Below are positions 48,954-56,800 of a stretch of DNA of 64,000 nt, in pieces. The translations under genes and the position numbers were made by a program. The stretch's first letter is position 1, and the number at the start of each line of letters is the position of its first letter. A model generated the notes under the pieces. The model worked only from the letters and a program-made list of their open reading frames with translations, was not told the origin of the DNA and ran no database searches. The stretch is from Macrostomum lignano (Eukaryota). The stretch lies in NCBI GenBank assembly GCA_002269645.1, contig NIVC01003792.1, positions 1 to 64,000 of the forward strand, read 5' to 3'.

Positions 48954-49725
48954 TCAAGGTTGGCTCAATGCTCTCGAAGGATCCAAGTAGCACTTCTTCG
49001 TGAGTCTGGACACTGTTTCCGAGACTGTGCTGAACCGTCGGTGCCCATGCTGTACCGGAGTGTTCTTCAAACGGTAGGCAACACTGGTCATCATGCTTAG
49101 GATATCGTTGCACTGGTACTCATCTGAAATAACTTTACTAAGAGCCTGGACGTAAAGCGAGCCCTTGCTCTCATCCCGAAAAGTGACGTTTCCTTCCGTA
49201 TTAGCAAAGCACATTAGAGTATCGGCGTCACAAGCGCGAGCGGGCACGCTCGATGACTGCGGCGCATCAACTGCTAAGCCTCTGCTCGAACACGAATTTT
49301 CCTCGATATGCTGGAAAGAAGAATAATTTGGGCTTGTCTCGCAGAGCCTCGCACTCGTTGGCCCGAATCGTGTCGTGATTGAAGAGATTTCCACTGGCAC
49401 GCCTTCTCGATCATAGATCCAGCCGTTACTTCCGTGACCCATCACAAATAAAATAAAGCAGCCAATCTTACTCAGCTCATCCCTCCGGGTGAGCTCGTCG
49501 TTGATAAACTCGAAGATTTCATGGCTCTTTGGGTTAAATTTCTTCACGTCAAAATTAAGTCTGGTAAACAAAGTTGACAAAATTTCAACATCTATCTCGG
49601 ATCCGACTCGATCGGAAAATTCAGACTCGCAGTTGTACTTGTGCACATTGATCAAGAGAAAGCGGCGCGTTGGCTGAGTCACTGGGTAGGCTTCATCCCC
49701 TGCTCCAGGATCGAGCATGTGTAAT
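48954..49725 (-). pseudogene. Caspase (C14) catalytic-domain exon lacking a functional active-site Cys: pseudo-caspase or pseudogene
   Basis: RVGSEIDVEIL, CFILFVMGHG and GSLYVQAL..SRLTKKCYL align with the intact caspase. A 1-nt deletion at about 49360-49364 hides KPKLFFFPAYRG in another frame, and the frame is restored about 25-30 codons later. TAG acceptor has the same phase as in the intact paralogue. Confidence 0.85.
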
Positions 49726-49911
49726 CTAAAAAAATTGTTTTATTTTTGTAAAACATGGCTTAAGTTGCAGAACCATGTACGAGCTCGTATTTTTTATATT
49801 CAATATCAAATACTTGTAATGCATAAGCTGGGTGCCAAAAATATAGGCTAACATATTTTGTAGCTCGATAAAACATTAATTCCCGTAAGGGCAACTCCAA
49901 AAAGCTCTTTC

Positions 49912-52900: not shown

Positions 52901-55900
52901 TCACCCTCGACAAAATGTCAAAGCTCTTAGTCATTAAAAGACTGGATGGCCGGCTCGCTGAGAACCCTGGGGAATCGCTGGACATTATGCTCTCCAGCTC
53001 TTTCCCACGTGCCGCACCGCCGCTAGGCTCATCGGACCACTCTCCGGGTGGACAAATCCTGGCTTCGACCATCATTACTAGAGAGAGGACGGCTCGCGCC
53101 GTAAAATCCTTCTCTCCTTTCAAGTCACCGGGACCTGACAAAATTTATCCTGCCTTCCTCCATGAGGCAGTTAAAAATGACAGATTTCTTGGTCTCCTCT
53201 GCAACCTCTTCAAGGCCAGCATTACCCTCGGGTACGTGCCAAAAGCCTGGCAAGAGGCCACGGTGGTCTTCATACCCAAACCAGGGAAGGGAGACTATCA
53301 CTCTGCCAAAGCTTACCGCCCCATCAGTCTGACATCTTTCTTCCTCAAACTGATGGAACGGCTGGTACTCTGGCGCCTCCTCCTCGTAGAGCTGAGGAAC
53401 TCCCCGCTCTCCCCTAATCAGCACGCCTTTTGTCCTGGACGTTCCATCGAAAGTGCGCTGCACGCCATTGTCGACAAGCTGGAGCGCGCCGTGCTTGGCA
53501 GGGGATACGCGCTCTCGCTTTTCCTCGACATTGATGGTGCTTTCAAAAATGTGCTCTTTGGAGCTTTTAGGCGGGCCCTGGAATCCCGGGGCACGCACGA
53601 GCACCTTATCCGCTGGATCATGTAAATGGTCTCCCATCGTACTGCCACCTCGCACCTCCTGGGACACTCACGCTCCGTGGAAGTCCAGAAAGGCGGACCG
53701 CAAGGTGGAGTCCTCAGCCCGATCCTCTGGAATTTAGTCATGGATGAGCTGCTTTGCAGCCCGCATCCGGACCCAGTTCAGAAGGTCGGCTATGCGGACG
53801 ATGTTACCGCCACTGTGGCTGGACCATCACCCGCGGTCTTCAGGGACCTCCTTCAAGCCTTCATCTACCGTGCCGAGCGCTGGGCACATAGCTGCGGTCT
53901 CAGGTTCTCTGAGTCTAAAACCGTGGCTATCATGTTCACCAGCCGCCGAAACTGGAGGATCGAACCGCTCTCCCTCTATGGCAAACCCGTTGCCATGGAG
54001 AAACAAACCAGATGTCTGGGTGTCACCCTCGACCACAGGTTGAGTTGGACCCCGCACGTCCAAACCAAAGCCCGCAAAGCTCTCGCGACTCTCGCGCAGA
54101 TCCACAGAGCTTTCGGCGCTACCTGGGGCCTCACCCCCCGCCGTCTCTGGTGGATCTACACTGCCATTGTTAGACCGGCCATCTCCTTCGCCGGCTTCAT
54201 TTGGAACAGTGCCCTAGAAGTGAAAGGGGTTATTGAGGCTCTAAATAGGGTACAAGGTCGCGCTTGTCGAGCTATCATGAGCGCGGCTCCCTCTACGCCC
54301 TTCGCTGGCATGAACTCCTTCCTGGACATTCCCCCCTCGACCTTTATGTTAGAGGGGAGGCAATGAAGACCACCCGCCGTCTGCTTGACGCGGGTGTCCA
54401 AATCCAGAAGCAGTTCGCCTTCAGAAAGCGGAACCTCCGGCCGTACGGCGACCTCAGCCTGCGAGACCTGGAAGCAGCGGGAGGCCTGCTGACCCTCTCG
54501 GACGGAATTCCGTCTACGCTCTGCCCTCCGCTCAAATTCAAAACCAGCATTCCACCACGTCATGAAGCAAGGGACAACTGGAAATCCCATGAAATCCACT
54601 GCTTCACTGACGGGTCCCAAATCAACTCCGCCTCTGGCTACGGCTACTGCATCGTGTCTGGAGGGAGAACTGTGGCGACCTTCTCCCAGCACACCGGCAC
54701 CTGCTCTACCGTCTTCCAGAAGGAAGTTCTCGCCATCAGCTCCTGCGCCATGGAGCTGTATAATCAGAGCGTCTGGGGGAAGGAGATTACCCTCCACTCG
54801 GACAGTAAAGCGGCTATCCAGGCCCTTGAGCGCACCACCACCTGCTCGCGTACAGTCCTTTACTGCATCGGGCAGCTCAACCGCTTAGGCGCCTCCAACA
54901 AGGTGTCCCTAAGGTGGATCCCCGGGCACTCGGGCCACCCCGGCAACGAGTTGGCCGATCGCCTGGCCAAGGCTGGCTCGACCGGTTCTTTTACTGGTCC
55001 TCTGCCCGTGCCCCCCACCCCCACCGCCGTTGTCACCACTCGGATCAACCAGTGGGTGGCTTCAAAGCACAGGGAGAGGTGGGCTAACGCCCCCGACTGC
55101 CGGCAATCCCGTGAGGCTGTCCCCTGTCCTTCCTCCGCCCTGCGCAAGGCCCTGCTTGGACTCAACCGCAGGGACATCAGGGCGGTGACCTTGGCCCTCT
55201 CGGGTCATGGCTGTTTTGCCAGGCATCGCTACCTCCAGGGAAAAATCCGCAGTGAGGAATGCCCATTCTGCCTCTCCAGTGTCGAGAATGCGGAGCACTT
55301 CATCTGTGAATGCCCCGCCTTTACTCAGGTCAGGCTCACCTACCTCGGCCCAAACCCGGACCTCTCCGACGTTTTCAGGCCCGAGATCTCTGCCAGCTCG
55401 TCCGCTACCTAAGGGCTACCGGGCGAGCGACAGTCCACCTCCTGGACCCTCCGGAGTGGGACCGCGCTGTGGACACCGGCACCACCGGAACTCCCTGCGC
55501 GACACCGCAGCACTAGCTGCCCGTGGTCGCCAGGGGTTAGCGAAATGGGCGGAAACGCCTCCTCGCTGTTTCCGGACGCACGGAGCCCCCTACCTGCAGC
55601 TAAGTCAAGTAAGTCAAGTTCCTGCTAATTGAATATCTTTTGATTTTGTAACTAGAGTTACATTTTCAAAATCGTCCGTTCCTGTACTAGTATCGTCTCT
55701 AAGGTCCAGCTTAGTGCCATGCAACCAGCAAAATAGATGTCCTTGGACAGCGTTTCAAATGCTATGAGTACATTACTAGTAAGTTTACTTGTCAATATCA
55801 TATTCTTAGCTCGTGTTTGCATACACGAAAATTTGAATCAACAAAAAATTTCTGATTGTCCTAGAATATATTATTTCCCTCAAATTTGATTGTAGCAACC

Positions 55901-56800
55901 ATTGAAATACTTTAGACTTTGCATAAGCTGAAACAATGAAGTAGGCAGCTGAACATAGTTGCAAGTTTCAGTGTCATCTTTTTTCGATTGTATTACTATG
56001 TTCTATAATTTCATTCGGAATTTTCGGTCCGAAAGTTAGGTCAGAAACCAATCAGAGACAAGAAAATATTCTGAAAGTTTGAATCCATTTGATTTCACAT
56101 AACTAGCTGGCAATCACATTAAAGCAAAATGTCTTTTCACCGTACTCTTTTAAAGCATTCTGTCAGTTCAAAAAATAAAAAGCACGAACATTGTCTAAAC
56201 CATAGATTTATGCGGGAAAGTACTTAGCTCTTTTATTAGCAAATTTCATGTTTGAAAGCGATCGAATGTGTGATAATTGTGTCAAACATTTACGTAAGTA
56301 AATAGACATCGGGGTTAAAATCTTGAGAACCTTATAGTCTTCTCTTTGCAGCAAGGGCCAAAACGGTATGTGGATAATACGAACTGCCTGGGCCGAAAAG
56401 CACGCCCAGCCAAAAAAACCATACAAGTATAACATTTTTTACACATATTTTAACAAGAAACAACTATAAAAATATAACAAAAACATTTATCACATACTAT
56501 CCTTACACTGTAAGGAGACATTGGGTTGAAATCACAGCGACTACAACCAATACTCACGTTCAATCGACAATAGGAGTACGAGTATAACAAAATGTATAAA
56601 TGGATAGTTTCCATAAATACATGTATTCATATTGTTAAAAAAGCCATTGAAGACTTGACTGGGACAGGGGTTACAAATTTTTTTGAAGGCCGATTTTTCA
56701 AACTGCTGCCATTTTTTTTTCTTTGCAGATAAAGAGCTGATTCTTTCACCAGGTTGTCCAGAATTTATTCCAGTTTTATATAAAATATTAGTTTGTAGCT
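49912..56800 (-). pseudogene. Decayed Rho/Rac-type GTPase gene interrupted by the LINE
   Basis: 55761-55619 reads [22 protein letters not shown].. (one frameshift). After removing the LINE and one TSD it continues in frame as ..LAGILELEYLELSTVSPEESHNALESIMTSIML (G5 region) to a stop at 49912. REDYKVLKIL at about 56330 resembles [10 protein letters not shown]. Confidence 0.65.
50035..55618 (+). mobile_element. Near full-length non-LTR retrotransposon (ORF1 + APE endonuclease, RT, RNase H, CCHC; I-group/Loa-Lian-like), inactivated
   Basis: ORF1 at about 50296-51563; QLNLHH and GDANAHH (APE); KSPGPD, YRPISL, FLDIDGAF, PQGGVLSP and YADD (RT); FTDGS and WIPGH (RNase H); CPFC..EHFICEC. Stop at 53623-53625 plus frameshifts; tail TAAGTCAAGTAAGTCAAG; TSD TTCC at 50031-50034 and 55619-55622. 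Confidence 0.92.

Follow-up and report, generated by a model that had tools for sequence, protein, structure and literature searches.

The stretch of DNA analysed here ("the window") comprises record positions 1-64000, that is 64,000 nucleotides, of contig NIVC01003792.1 (76,592 bp; assembly Mlig_3_7, GCA_002269645.1) of the flatworm Macrostomum lignano. Two loci on its minus strand are of interest. The first is a damaged pair: the relic of a Rac-like small GTPase, here called psi-Rho, is interrupted by a long interspersed nuclear element (LINE) and followed by a terminal exon that encodes a caspase domain, Casp-A. The second, 5 kb upstream on the same contig, is an intact annotated gene in which Ras-type GTPase domains and a caspase domain share one open reading frame (ORF). 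A preliminary description, made from the window sequence alone, had proposed that the damaged pair is a small-GTPase-caspase fusion gene destroyed by the LINE. The architecture it envisaged proved to be real, in the neighbouring gene. The damaged pair itself lies in a region, between 45723 and 61951, for which the RNA-seq-based annotation of the contig lists no genes.

The neighbouring gene, BOX15_Mlig021837g1 (protein PAA49772.1, P0273; UniProt A0A267DMJ5), is annotated at 69067-61951 on the minus strand and encodes 1015 aa, with recorded domains Ras, Roc, Ras, Roc and Peptidase_C14 in a single ORF. The protein could be rebuilt exactly from the genomic DNA as 10 exons, with introns that are all GT-AG and all phase 2 (Table 1). 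Its caspase exon, Casp-B, was detected by tblastn with human CASP3, as a second caspase at ~62700-62080 on the minus strand (the human RAC1 and CASP3 sequences served as tblastn probes only; conclusions rest on window-encoded and database sequences). A 45-bp tandem repeat at 63244-63547 (6.8 copies, 98% matches) codes for the linker repeats, TEVYPSQEPTGPAEQ. Retention of the intron after exon 7 would lead to an immediate stop, and a CAAX motif is absent from both G-domains. Only exons 8-10 of the gene (61951-64000) fall within the window, exon 7 ending 75 bp past the window end; the GTPase exons were outside the window and hence invisible to the preliminary description.

Further copies of the same architecture were found in the databases. 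Firstly, the best HMMER hit of Casp-A is the 757-aa M. lignano protein PAA63380.1 (P0126; BOX15_Mlig000293g2, A0A267EPC1), in which Pfam recognises Ras (E 2.5e-33) together with Peptidase_C14; it is a 99%-identical copy of the fusion on another contig, and PAA49772.1 falls in its sequence cluster. Secondly, P0291 (1207 aa; UniProt "CASPASE_P10 domain-containing"), a gene model made independently for the older ML2 assembly, likewise joins Ras domains to a caspase C-terminus. Screening with a local Rho profile of 290 proteins, including the 150 closest caspase representatives and leaving P0291 aside, found both domains only in PAA49772.1 and PAA63380.1, and a search with full-length PAA49772.1 returned no match outside Macrostomum that combines Ras with a caspase. 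PAA49772.1 and PAA63380.1 are named in the databases as "hypothetical protein" or "Caspase family p20 domain-containing protein", and nothing relevant on the fusion proteins or on a GTPase-caspase architecture was found in open-access full text. The fusion proteins are deposited in GenBank and UniProt but unnamed, and we have not found their architecture described.

A GTPase-caspase fusion gene is present in the M. lignano genome, its ORF resting on the published, RNA-seq-based annotation. That annotation was made with StringTie/TACO, TBONE and TransDecoder, the StringTie/TACO models being split at trans-splice and poly(A) evidence and TransDecoder calling the ORFs (PMC5730564).

The G-domains of the fusion gene depart from a canonical Rho protein at the positions of Gly12 and Gln61. 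G-domain 2 keeps G1 (GDEKVGKT), Thr35, DxxG, TKMD and CSAL, with G12E and Q61S as changes; G-domain 1 carries G12E, a degraded G3 (WDSPSKDE, in which the DxxG glycine is gone and Lys occupies the Gln61 position) and TKRD. Substitutions of the G12/Q61 type are those of GTPase-deficient atypical Rho proteins, and by this measure the Rho domains of the fusion gene look GTPase-deficient. The atypical Rho domains, without CAAX, would stand in for CARD or DED as a recruitment or oligomerisation module; fused to the caspase by a disordered repeat linker, they would plausibly be constitutively nucleotide-bound and serve for docking, and the Rho module would gather caspase domains for activation.

Table 1. 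Features of the intact fusion gene and of the damaged pair on contig NIVC01003792.1 (asterisks in peptides denote stop codons)
Feature	Position	Strand	Evidence or remark
Fusion gene exon 1, G-domain 1	69067-68535	minus	PAA49772.1 exon reconstruction
Fusion gene exons 2-6, five small linker exons	between exons 1 and 7	minus	PAA49772.1 exon reconstruction
Fusion gene exon 7, G-domain 2	64695-64075	minus	PAA49772.1 exon reconstruction
Fusion gene exon 8, acidic linker	63921-63802	minus	PAA49772.1 exon reconstruction
Fusion gene exon 9, seven 15-aa repeats	63728-63198	minus	PAA49772.1 exon reconstruction
Fusion gene exon 10, caspase (Casp-B) with intact QACRG	62719-61954	minus	PAA49772.1 exon reconstruction, Pfam, tblastn
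psi-Rho, whole	~56378 down to 49912	minus	Pieces split by LINE and spacer
psi-Rho switch-II/beta4 piece, IIHIPFWPLLQREDYKVLKILTPMSIYLRKCLTQLSHIRSLSNMKFANKRAKYFP	56214-56378	minus	Inside ORF 56208-56435; Rac residues 49-99; tblastn E 0.006
Spacer within psi-Rho, ~440 bp	55774-56213	minus	Between equivalents of Rac residues 99 and 100
psi-Rho G4 piece, MYS*HLKRCPRTSILLV(+TGCA)..., then Rho-insert-like stretch	55627-55773	minus	MAFFT against three Racs, tblastn
Degenerate LINE, antisense to psi-Rho	50075-55619	plus	Pfam, ORF list, GC, target-site duplication
psi-Rho 3' piece, ...GGLPPEPADLPQGILELEYLELSTVSPEESHNALESIMTSIMLTREARLSNS*, G5/alpha5-like	49912-50074	minus	Frame continuity after LINE excision
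Spacer from psi-Rho stop to Casp-A exon, 186 bp	49726-49911	minus	Sequence and translations
Casp-A, caspase-domain terminal exon	48954-49725	minus	Pfam, PDB matches, alignment to Casp-B
Catalytic-His motif GHGS (within VMGHGSNG)	49428-49439	minus	Kept in Casp-A; alignments to caspase-8/-3 and Casp-B
Out-of-frame stretch in Casp-A, ~32 codons	49272-49367	minus	DNA alignment to Casp-B

The caspase half of the damaged pair is readily recognised. Casp-A stays open for 254 codons, from an ATG at 49718-49716 to a stop at 48956-48954, and the corresponding ORF (48954-49718, minus strand) matches Pfam Peptidase_C14 (PF00656) with an E value of 4.6e-25 over profile positions 2-233 of 233. Matches to caspase-8, -3 and -7 structures in the PDB have E values of 1e-14 to 1e-11, and identity to Casp-B is 36% across 242 aa. 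A word-indexed protein search gave no match to Casp-A, and nothing close to it turned up when 1.84 billion representative proteins were searched exhaustively with HMMER. The exon starts at 49725, behind a phase-2 acceptor AG (49727-49726) that follows a polypyrimidine tract.

The catalytic Cys of the QACxG motif is gone: the ORF frame reads QHIEE at this point, and the ancestral frame reads PAYRG (a relic pentapeptide at 49314-49300, minus strand, in which P and Y stand where Casp-B has Q and C). The cysteine is missing because a pair of deletions, one of 1 nt at 49368/49367 and one of net 2 nt before 49271 relative to Casp-B, scrambles the ~32 codons around QACRG. The out-of-frame region can still be aligned with Casp-B in two ways: (i) as DNA, with 73% blastn identity over 70 nt, and (ii) as protein in the old frame, where RANECEALRDKPKLFFFPAYRGK corresponds to RGNECTGLCNKPKLFFIQACRGK of Casp-B (tblastn 65% identity, E 2.8e-4). 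QAC itself has been destroyed through four base substitutions. The residues that form the P1-Asp pocket are, in caspase-1 numbering, Arg179, Gln283 and Arg341; in the alignment, Casp-A keeps both Arg (DRVGSE, TFRDES) and has lost the Gln, which belongs to QACxG. As judged from the DNA, Casp-A has no catalytic cysteine, whichever frame is read.

The GTPase half is far more decayed. It was tested by frameshift-tolerant protein-to-DNA alignment, with scores set against dinucleotide shuffles, and psi-Rho as a whole aligns with the local Rac proteins at z = 7-12 over 100 such shuffles. The switch-II/beta4 piece (IIHIPFWPLLQREDYKVLKILTP...NKRAKYFP) is significant on its own, with a dynamic-programming score of 49 against a null of 28.9 +/- 3.9 (z 5.2, 0/200). 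The preliminary description had read G4, a Rho insert and G5 in the remainder. Its G4 stands: the core GTKLDLRDD (55718-55692) agrees with Rac at 9/9 residues (blastn E 2.5e-4), and the underlying 27 nt are 85% identical to the adjacent Rac genes, with 4/4 differences synonymous. For its G5, the piece containing YLELS reaches z 1.6-1.9 against Rac when taken alone, below significance; against the C-terminus of G-domain 1 of PAA49772.1, though, the C-terminal piece scores z 4.5 (1/500). By count on the LINE-excised translation, YLELS sits 49 residues past the D of TKLD; the distance from that D to G5 is about 40 residues in Rac and about 26 in H-Ras.

Other parts of the GTPase have been lost or displaced. 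G3 is gone, DTAGQ having become PLLQR (within WPLLQREDYK at 56358-56329), and no significant match to the G1 P-loop GxxxxGK[ST] was found, only an AFGISRGT-like string at 56843-56864 with stops close by. Candidate G1 and G3 relics right upstream of G4 (55725-55960, "ANTS*EYD") were dropped, with z about 1. In the alignment with the three Racs (MAFFT), a 4-nt insertion, TGCA (55723-55720), breaks the frame two codons ahead of G-T-K; the displaced frame, MYS*HLKRCPRTSILLV, contains an in-frame TAG (55764-55762) at the position of Rac Glu100. In the spacer of ~440-445 bp, neither dynamic-programming alignment nor tblastn detected any resemblance to Rac or the fusion-gene G-domains; it lacks a GT donor at its 5' end (GCATAA stands there), and no terminal inverted or direct repeats that would account for it were found. 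The Pfam Ras profile gave no match at E <= 10 in three frames of the LINE-excised region or in the concatenated pieces. Taken together, the similarity of psi-Rho to Rho proteins is, on alignment evidence, real but thin, and psi-Rho is too decayed to be assigned to any class beyond "Rac-like".

The LINE carries ORF1, an APE-type endonuclease, reverse transcriptase, RNase H and zf-RVT (Pfam matches Exo_endo_phos_2, RVT_1, RNase_H and zf-RVT), all split into several ORFs. It ends in the 3' tail (TAAGTCAAG)x2, has a GC content of 56-62% against about 36-43% in neighbouring 2-kb bins, and is flanked by a target-site duplication, the heptamer TCCTGCT at 50068-50074 and 55620-55626. Since its ORFs are broken, the copy is inactive and its insertion old. 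As the preliminary description had stated, removal of the LINE restores a continuous frame: when the body and one heptamer are cut out, a single frame continues from the junction as GLPPEPADLPQGILELEYLELSTVSPEES to ...SNS* and reads, with a slash at the junction, ...KDIQLAG/GLPPEP...LEYLELSTVSPEES...SNS*. The stop codon lies at 49914-49912, directly after ...TREARLSNS, and neither a polybasic region nor a CAAX motif precedes it; the adjacent Racs end in CKIL, CKLL and CEVL.

Between this stop and the Casp-A exon lie 186 bp, close to the ~190 bp given in the preliminary description, which had also correctly recorded the shared strand and the lack of a CAAX. The spacer holds a second in-frame stop (49878-49876) and a phase-2 donor, CAA/GTATTT (GT 49813-49812), in the places where stops at 49912 and about 49876 and a donor near 49812 had been noted; the donor phase does match that of the Casp-A acceptor, and the donor is indeed as weak as had been conceded. 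A splice from the psi-Rho frame to Casp-A would need read-through of two stops in addition to the weak donor, and is not supported as the sequence stands.

The proposal that the pair was "destroyed by a LINE insertion" puts too much on a single lesion. The LINE does split the frame, but many further lesions are independent of it, and Casp-A has lost its Cys as well. With its LINE, 4-nt frameshift, stops, foreign spacer, lost G3 and G1 and lack of a catalytic cysteine, the locus in its present state cannot, to judge by its sequence, work as a fusion.

Two further contigs carry parts of the region, in a genome that is strongly duplicated (non-repetitive duplicated blocks amount to 180 Mb; PMC5730564). 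Contig NIVC01003617.1 is 99.4% identical over 35186-53638, includes the same LINE 5' junction and ends within the LINE; across 48274-50201, the Casp-A indels included, it is identical. The shared junction places the LINE insertion before the duplication of the locus, and because this independent contig shares the lesions, they are not random assembly errors. Contig NIVC01001849.1 is collinear and otherwise 99% identical through Casp-B, after which it carries a 9.5-kb insertion (L005 14947-24434) at window position ~61587-61590, just downstream of the Casp-B stop. The comparison with this contig reaches window position 61443, short of the equivalent of psi-Rho and Casp-A.

The structure of related caspases bears on what once preceded Casp-A. 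In Casp-B, PAA47029.1 (P0128) and PAA56209.1 (P0129)—the last two read for their caspase-exon boundaries alone—the caspase starts in an exon with a phase-2 acceptor, 6-7 codons before a conserved YPVT; the Casp-A acceptor (AG/A) agrees in phase and lies 12 codons ahead of YPVT. From this conserved phase-2 acceptor it follows that the ancestor of Casp-A had coding exons upstream, and the preliminary description was sound in holding that Casp-A needs such an exon, the phase being conserved in three relatives. It also named no candidate other than psi-Rho, and in the LINE-excised interval 45.7-61.9 kb psi-Rho is the only other protein-like relic on the strand. The closest caspase relatives, M. 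lignano P0128, P0129, P0130 and P0132 from other contigs, have ankyrin repeats N-terminal to the caspase, in some cases accompanied by a protein kinase domain. A neighbour-joining tree places Casp-A inside a Macrostomum-specific caspase clade (100% bootstrap); Macrostomum caspases with unconventional prodomains are a lineage-specific expansion.

Was the damaged pair ever one gene? The points in favour are that (i) strand and order are those of the live neighbour, (ii) the gap is 186 bp, (iii) psi-Rho lacks a CAAX, (iv) the acceptor phase fits, (v) the C-terminal piece is more like G-domain 1 than like Rac, and (vi) nothing else upstream qualifies as a candidate. On these grounds psi-Rho and Casp-A were likely once a single transcript, as we infer from their arrangement. 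The reading that we favour by a little over an even chance is that the locus is a decayed paralogue of the fusion type, a psi-Rho module followed by Casp-A, and so belongs, as a defunct copy, to a gene type specific to Macrostomum. Genes of this type would join a caspase cassette exon, across a phase-2 intron that is conserved, to N-terminal modules that vary; the N-terminal module of the damaged pair, as in Mlig021837.g1, would have been an atypical, non-prenylated Rho domain.

Several observations weigh against a decayed fusion. Firstly, psi-Rho aligns with the stand-alone Racs at z 7-11, with G-domain 1 at z 3-4 and with G-domain 2 at z about 0, so that it may be no more than a defunct copy from the neighbouring Rac array. 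Secondly, no acceptable in-frame donor survives between psi-Rho and Casp-A, no homologue of the Casp-B linker exons was found upstream of Casp-A (blastn, tblastn), and Casp-A has an ATG of its own 3 codons downstream of the acceptor. Thirdly, the tree gives 66% support, on a long branch, for grouping Casp-A with the Ank-kinase-caspase, and no resolved sister relation to Casp-B. Fourthly, neither the LINE-free allele that the preliminary description proposed to seek nor an intact one was found: NIVC01003617.1, the only other readable copy, carries the same LINE, and the compared part of NIVC01001849.1 ends before the equivalent locus. Finally, the fusion ORF of the neighbour rests on the published annotation.

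The strongest competitor, which we consider possible but clearly less probable, takes the pair as two unrelated relics: psi-Rho a dead duplicate from the tandem Rac array, Casp-A a separate caspase gene or pseudogene with upstream exons of its own that have disappeared or are located elsewhere, and their adjacency and matching phase a coincidence. It draws on the overall proximity of psi-Rho to the stand-alone Racs rather than to the fusion G-domains (including the 9/9 agreement in G4), on the presence of three intact Rac genes only 4-9 kb away, on the lack of a resolved sister relation between Casp-A and Casp-B in the tree, and on the two stops and weak donor that stand between the relics. 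Coincidence must, however, also explain why an intact neighbour 5 kb off repeats the same strand and order, why psi-Rho is without the polybasic-CAAX tail common to all three Racs, and why its C-terminal piece fits G-domain 1 (z 4.5) and not Rac; moreover, the phase-2 acceptor needs an upstream coding exon, for which 45.7-61.9 kb offers no other candidate.

A second alternative is that Casp-A lives on as a stand-alone pseudo-caspase, read from its own ATG at 49718 and serving, much as cFLIP does, as a decoy or regulator, with psi-Rho and the LINE as debris. The frame is stop-free over 254 codons although ~64% diverged from any relative, the frameshift is compensated such that the p10-like part remains in frame, and the catalytic His survives along with the two P1-pocket Arg. 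Under this alternative, AG 49727-49726 might be a spliced-leader trans-splice site: a strong polypyrimidine-AG lies 7 nt ahead of the ATG, and trans-splicing is common in M. lignano, affecting 38.8% of genes (PMC5730564). Yet the RNA-seq-built annotation has no gene there, the searched databases hold no close protein, and the conserved relatives splice their caspase exon to upstream modules. Compensated indels with a 32-codon stop-free stretch have, by our estimate, a ~10% chance under neutrality, which does not make a compelling case for selection. We regard a live Casp-A as improbable.

cFLIP and the Aedes aegypti decoy CASPS18 are expressed, conserved regulators with a caspase fold and without the catalytic Cys. 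The fold is kept and the Cys missing in each, as in Casp-A, which lost its Cys by frameshift; unlike them, Casp-A has no annotated transcript and no known orthologue.

Indel errors are a recognised weakness of long-read assemblies, but that the psi-Rho and Casp-A frameshifts are PacBio errors in a locus intact but for its LINE is very hard to credit, given that the independently assembled NIVC01003617.1 is identical across 48274-50201, Casp-A indels included, and that a 4-nt insertion, stop-creating substitutions, the four-base loss of QAC and a ~440-bp spacer are not homopolymer miscalls.

We return to the reading of the damaged pair as a decayed fusion, and to how it compares with its relatives. 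PAA49772.1 and PAA63380.1 share with it a Rac-derived GTPase 5' of a caspase terminal exon, a phase-2 acceptor just upstream of YPVT and the lack of a CAAX, with a caspase identity of 34-37%; PAA49772.1 further shares contig and strand. PAA49772.1 differs in being intact and annotated, with 10 canonical exons, two G-domains that have usable G1, G4 and G5, a long acidic and 15-aa-repeat linker, and QACRG, whereas the damaged copy lacks linker, catalytic Cys and annotation, and its GTPase is decayed and split by the LINE. The Ank-caspases (PAA56209.1, PAA46841.1) and the Ank-kinase-caspase (PAA47029.1) belong to the same clade and have the same 3' cassette exon and phase-2 intron; their N-terminal modules, in contrast, are ankyrin repeats and/or a protein kinase rather than GTPases.

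Three intact, intronless Racs, detected by tblastn with RAC1, lie within the window, at 40760-41338 (minus), 42409-42996 (plus) and 45142-45723 (plus); they have 77-83% identity to human RAC1 and the CAAX boxes CEVL, CKIL and CKLL. This tandem array, beside the caspase/GTPase cluster, is likely the source of the fusion G-domains. The fusion would have arisen when, beside the tandem Rac array, exon shuffling by way of symmetrical phase-2 introns moved a caspase cassette, and the psi-Rho/Casp-A pair would record both birth and death within a young gene family. Taken as a whole, it is probable that M. lignano makes caspases with a prodomain of 1-2 atypical, non-prenylated, probably GTPase-deficient Rho domains, of which the damaged pair would be a dead third member. 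The damaged interval itself is an ordinary pseudogene.

Atypical, GTPase-deficient Rho proteins include Rnd1-3, RhoH and RhoBTB, the last of which is without CAAX and fused to other domains. Like them, both fusion G-domains are substituted at the residues that correspond to Gly12 (G12E) and Gln61 (Q61K in domain 1 and Q61S in domain 2); we know of no atypical Rho fused to a protease. In the Apaf-1/CED-4 apoptosome, the NLR inflammasomes and DAPK1 (Roc-COR-death-domain), the concept is similar, in that a death protease is assembled or activated under the control of a switch that binds nucleotide. In these systems, the caspase and its switch, a STAND ATPase or Roc, sit on different polypeptides joined via CARD, PYD or DD adaptors; in the fusion gene, by contrast, a Ras-superfamily G-domain is joined directly to the caspase. 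Known caspases have death-fold prodomains (CARD, DED, PYD), by which their recruitment and activation proceed, or none, and a Rho-type G-domain would be a new prodomain class. If the prediction is correct, nucleotide state or Rho-effector binding would be tied directly to protease activation, in a regenerating flatworm in which transgenesis and RNA interference are usable. The locus also displays a possible route of origin: a tandem Rac array beside duplicated caspase cassettes, one intron phase, and a decayed copy next to a live gene.

Additional features of the contig were recorded. Upstream of the fusion gene, beyond the window end, record positions 73107-70758 (minus) hold an annotated 560-aa gene with two Ras domains, and 74339-73892 (minus) hold caspase-like fragments that are 42-48% identical to parts of Casp-A; with these, the minus strand shows three or more alternations of GTPase and caspase modules. 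A P-element/THAP9-like DNA transposon relic lies between Casp-B and psi-Rho (57835-60736, minus) and comprises a THAP domain at 60581-60736, a TNP-like RNase H domain within an ORF of 545 aa (58613-60250) and another ORF of 187 aa. A piece of another LINE, an RNase H and zf-RVT-like C-terminus at 43793-44470 (minus), separates two of the Racs. Beyond the Racs, an annotated tubulin-tyrosine-ligase-like gene (PF03133; 37282-40113, minus; single exon, 943 aa) has a near-identical copy on NIVC01003617.1.

The remainder of the window contains several tandem repeats. A 52-bp GC-rich satellite forms three arrays of up to 27 copies (2-630, 10670-12103 and 14417-15859), and a block duplication is suggested by 3317-3802 and 7213-7510, where related repeats occur (90/181-bp and 18-bp GTT-rich). 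Minisatellites are found at 21079-21472 (a perfect 16-bp unit x 24.6) and 29441-29798 (35 bp x 10.3), and (ATATGGG)n, in about 112 copies at 25143-25964, explains why the GC skew spikes to +0.41 in the bin from 24 to 26 kb.

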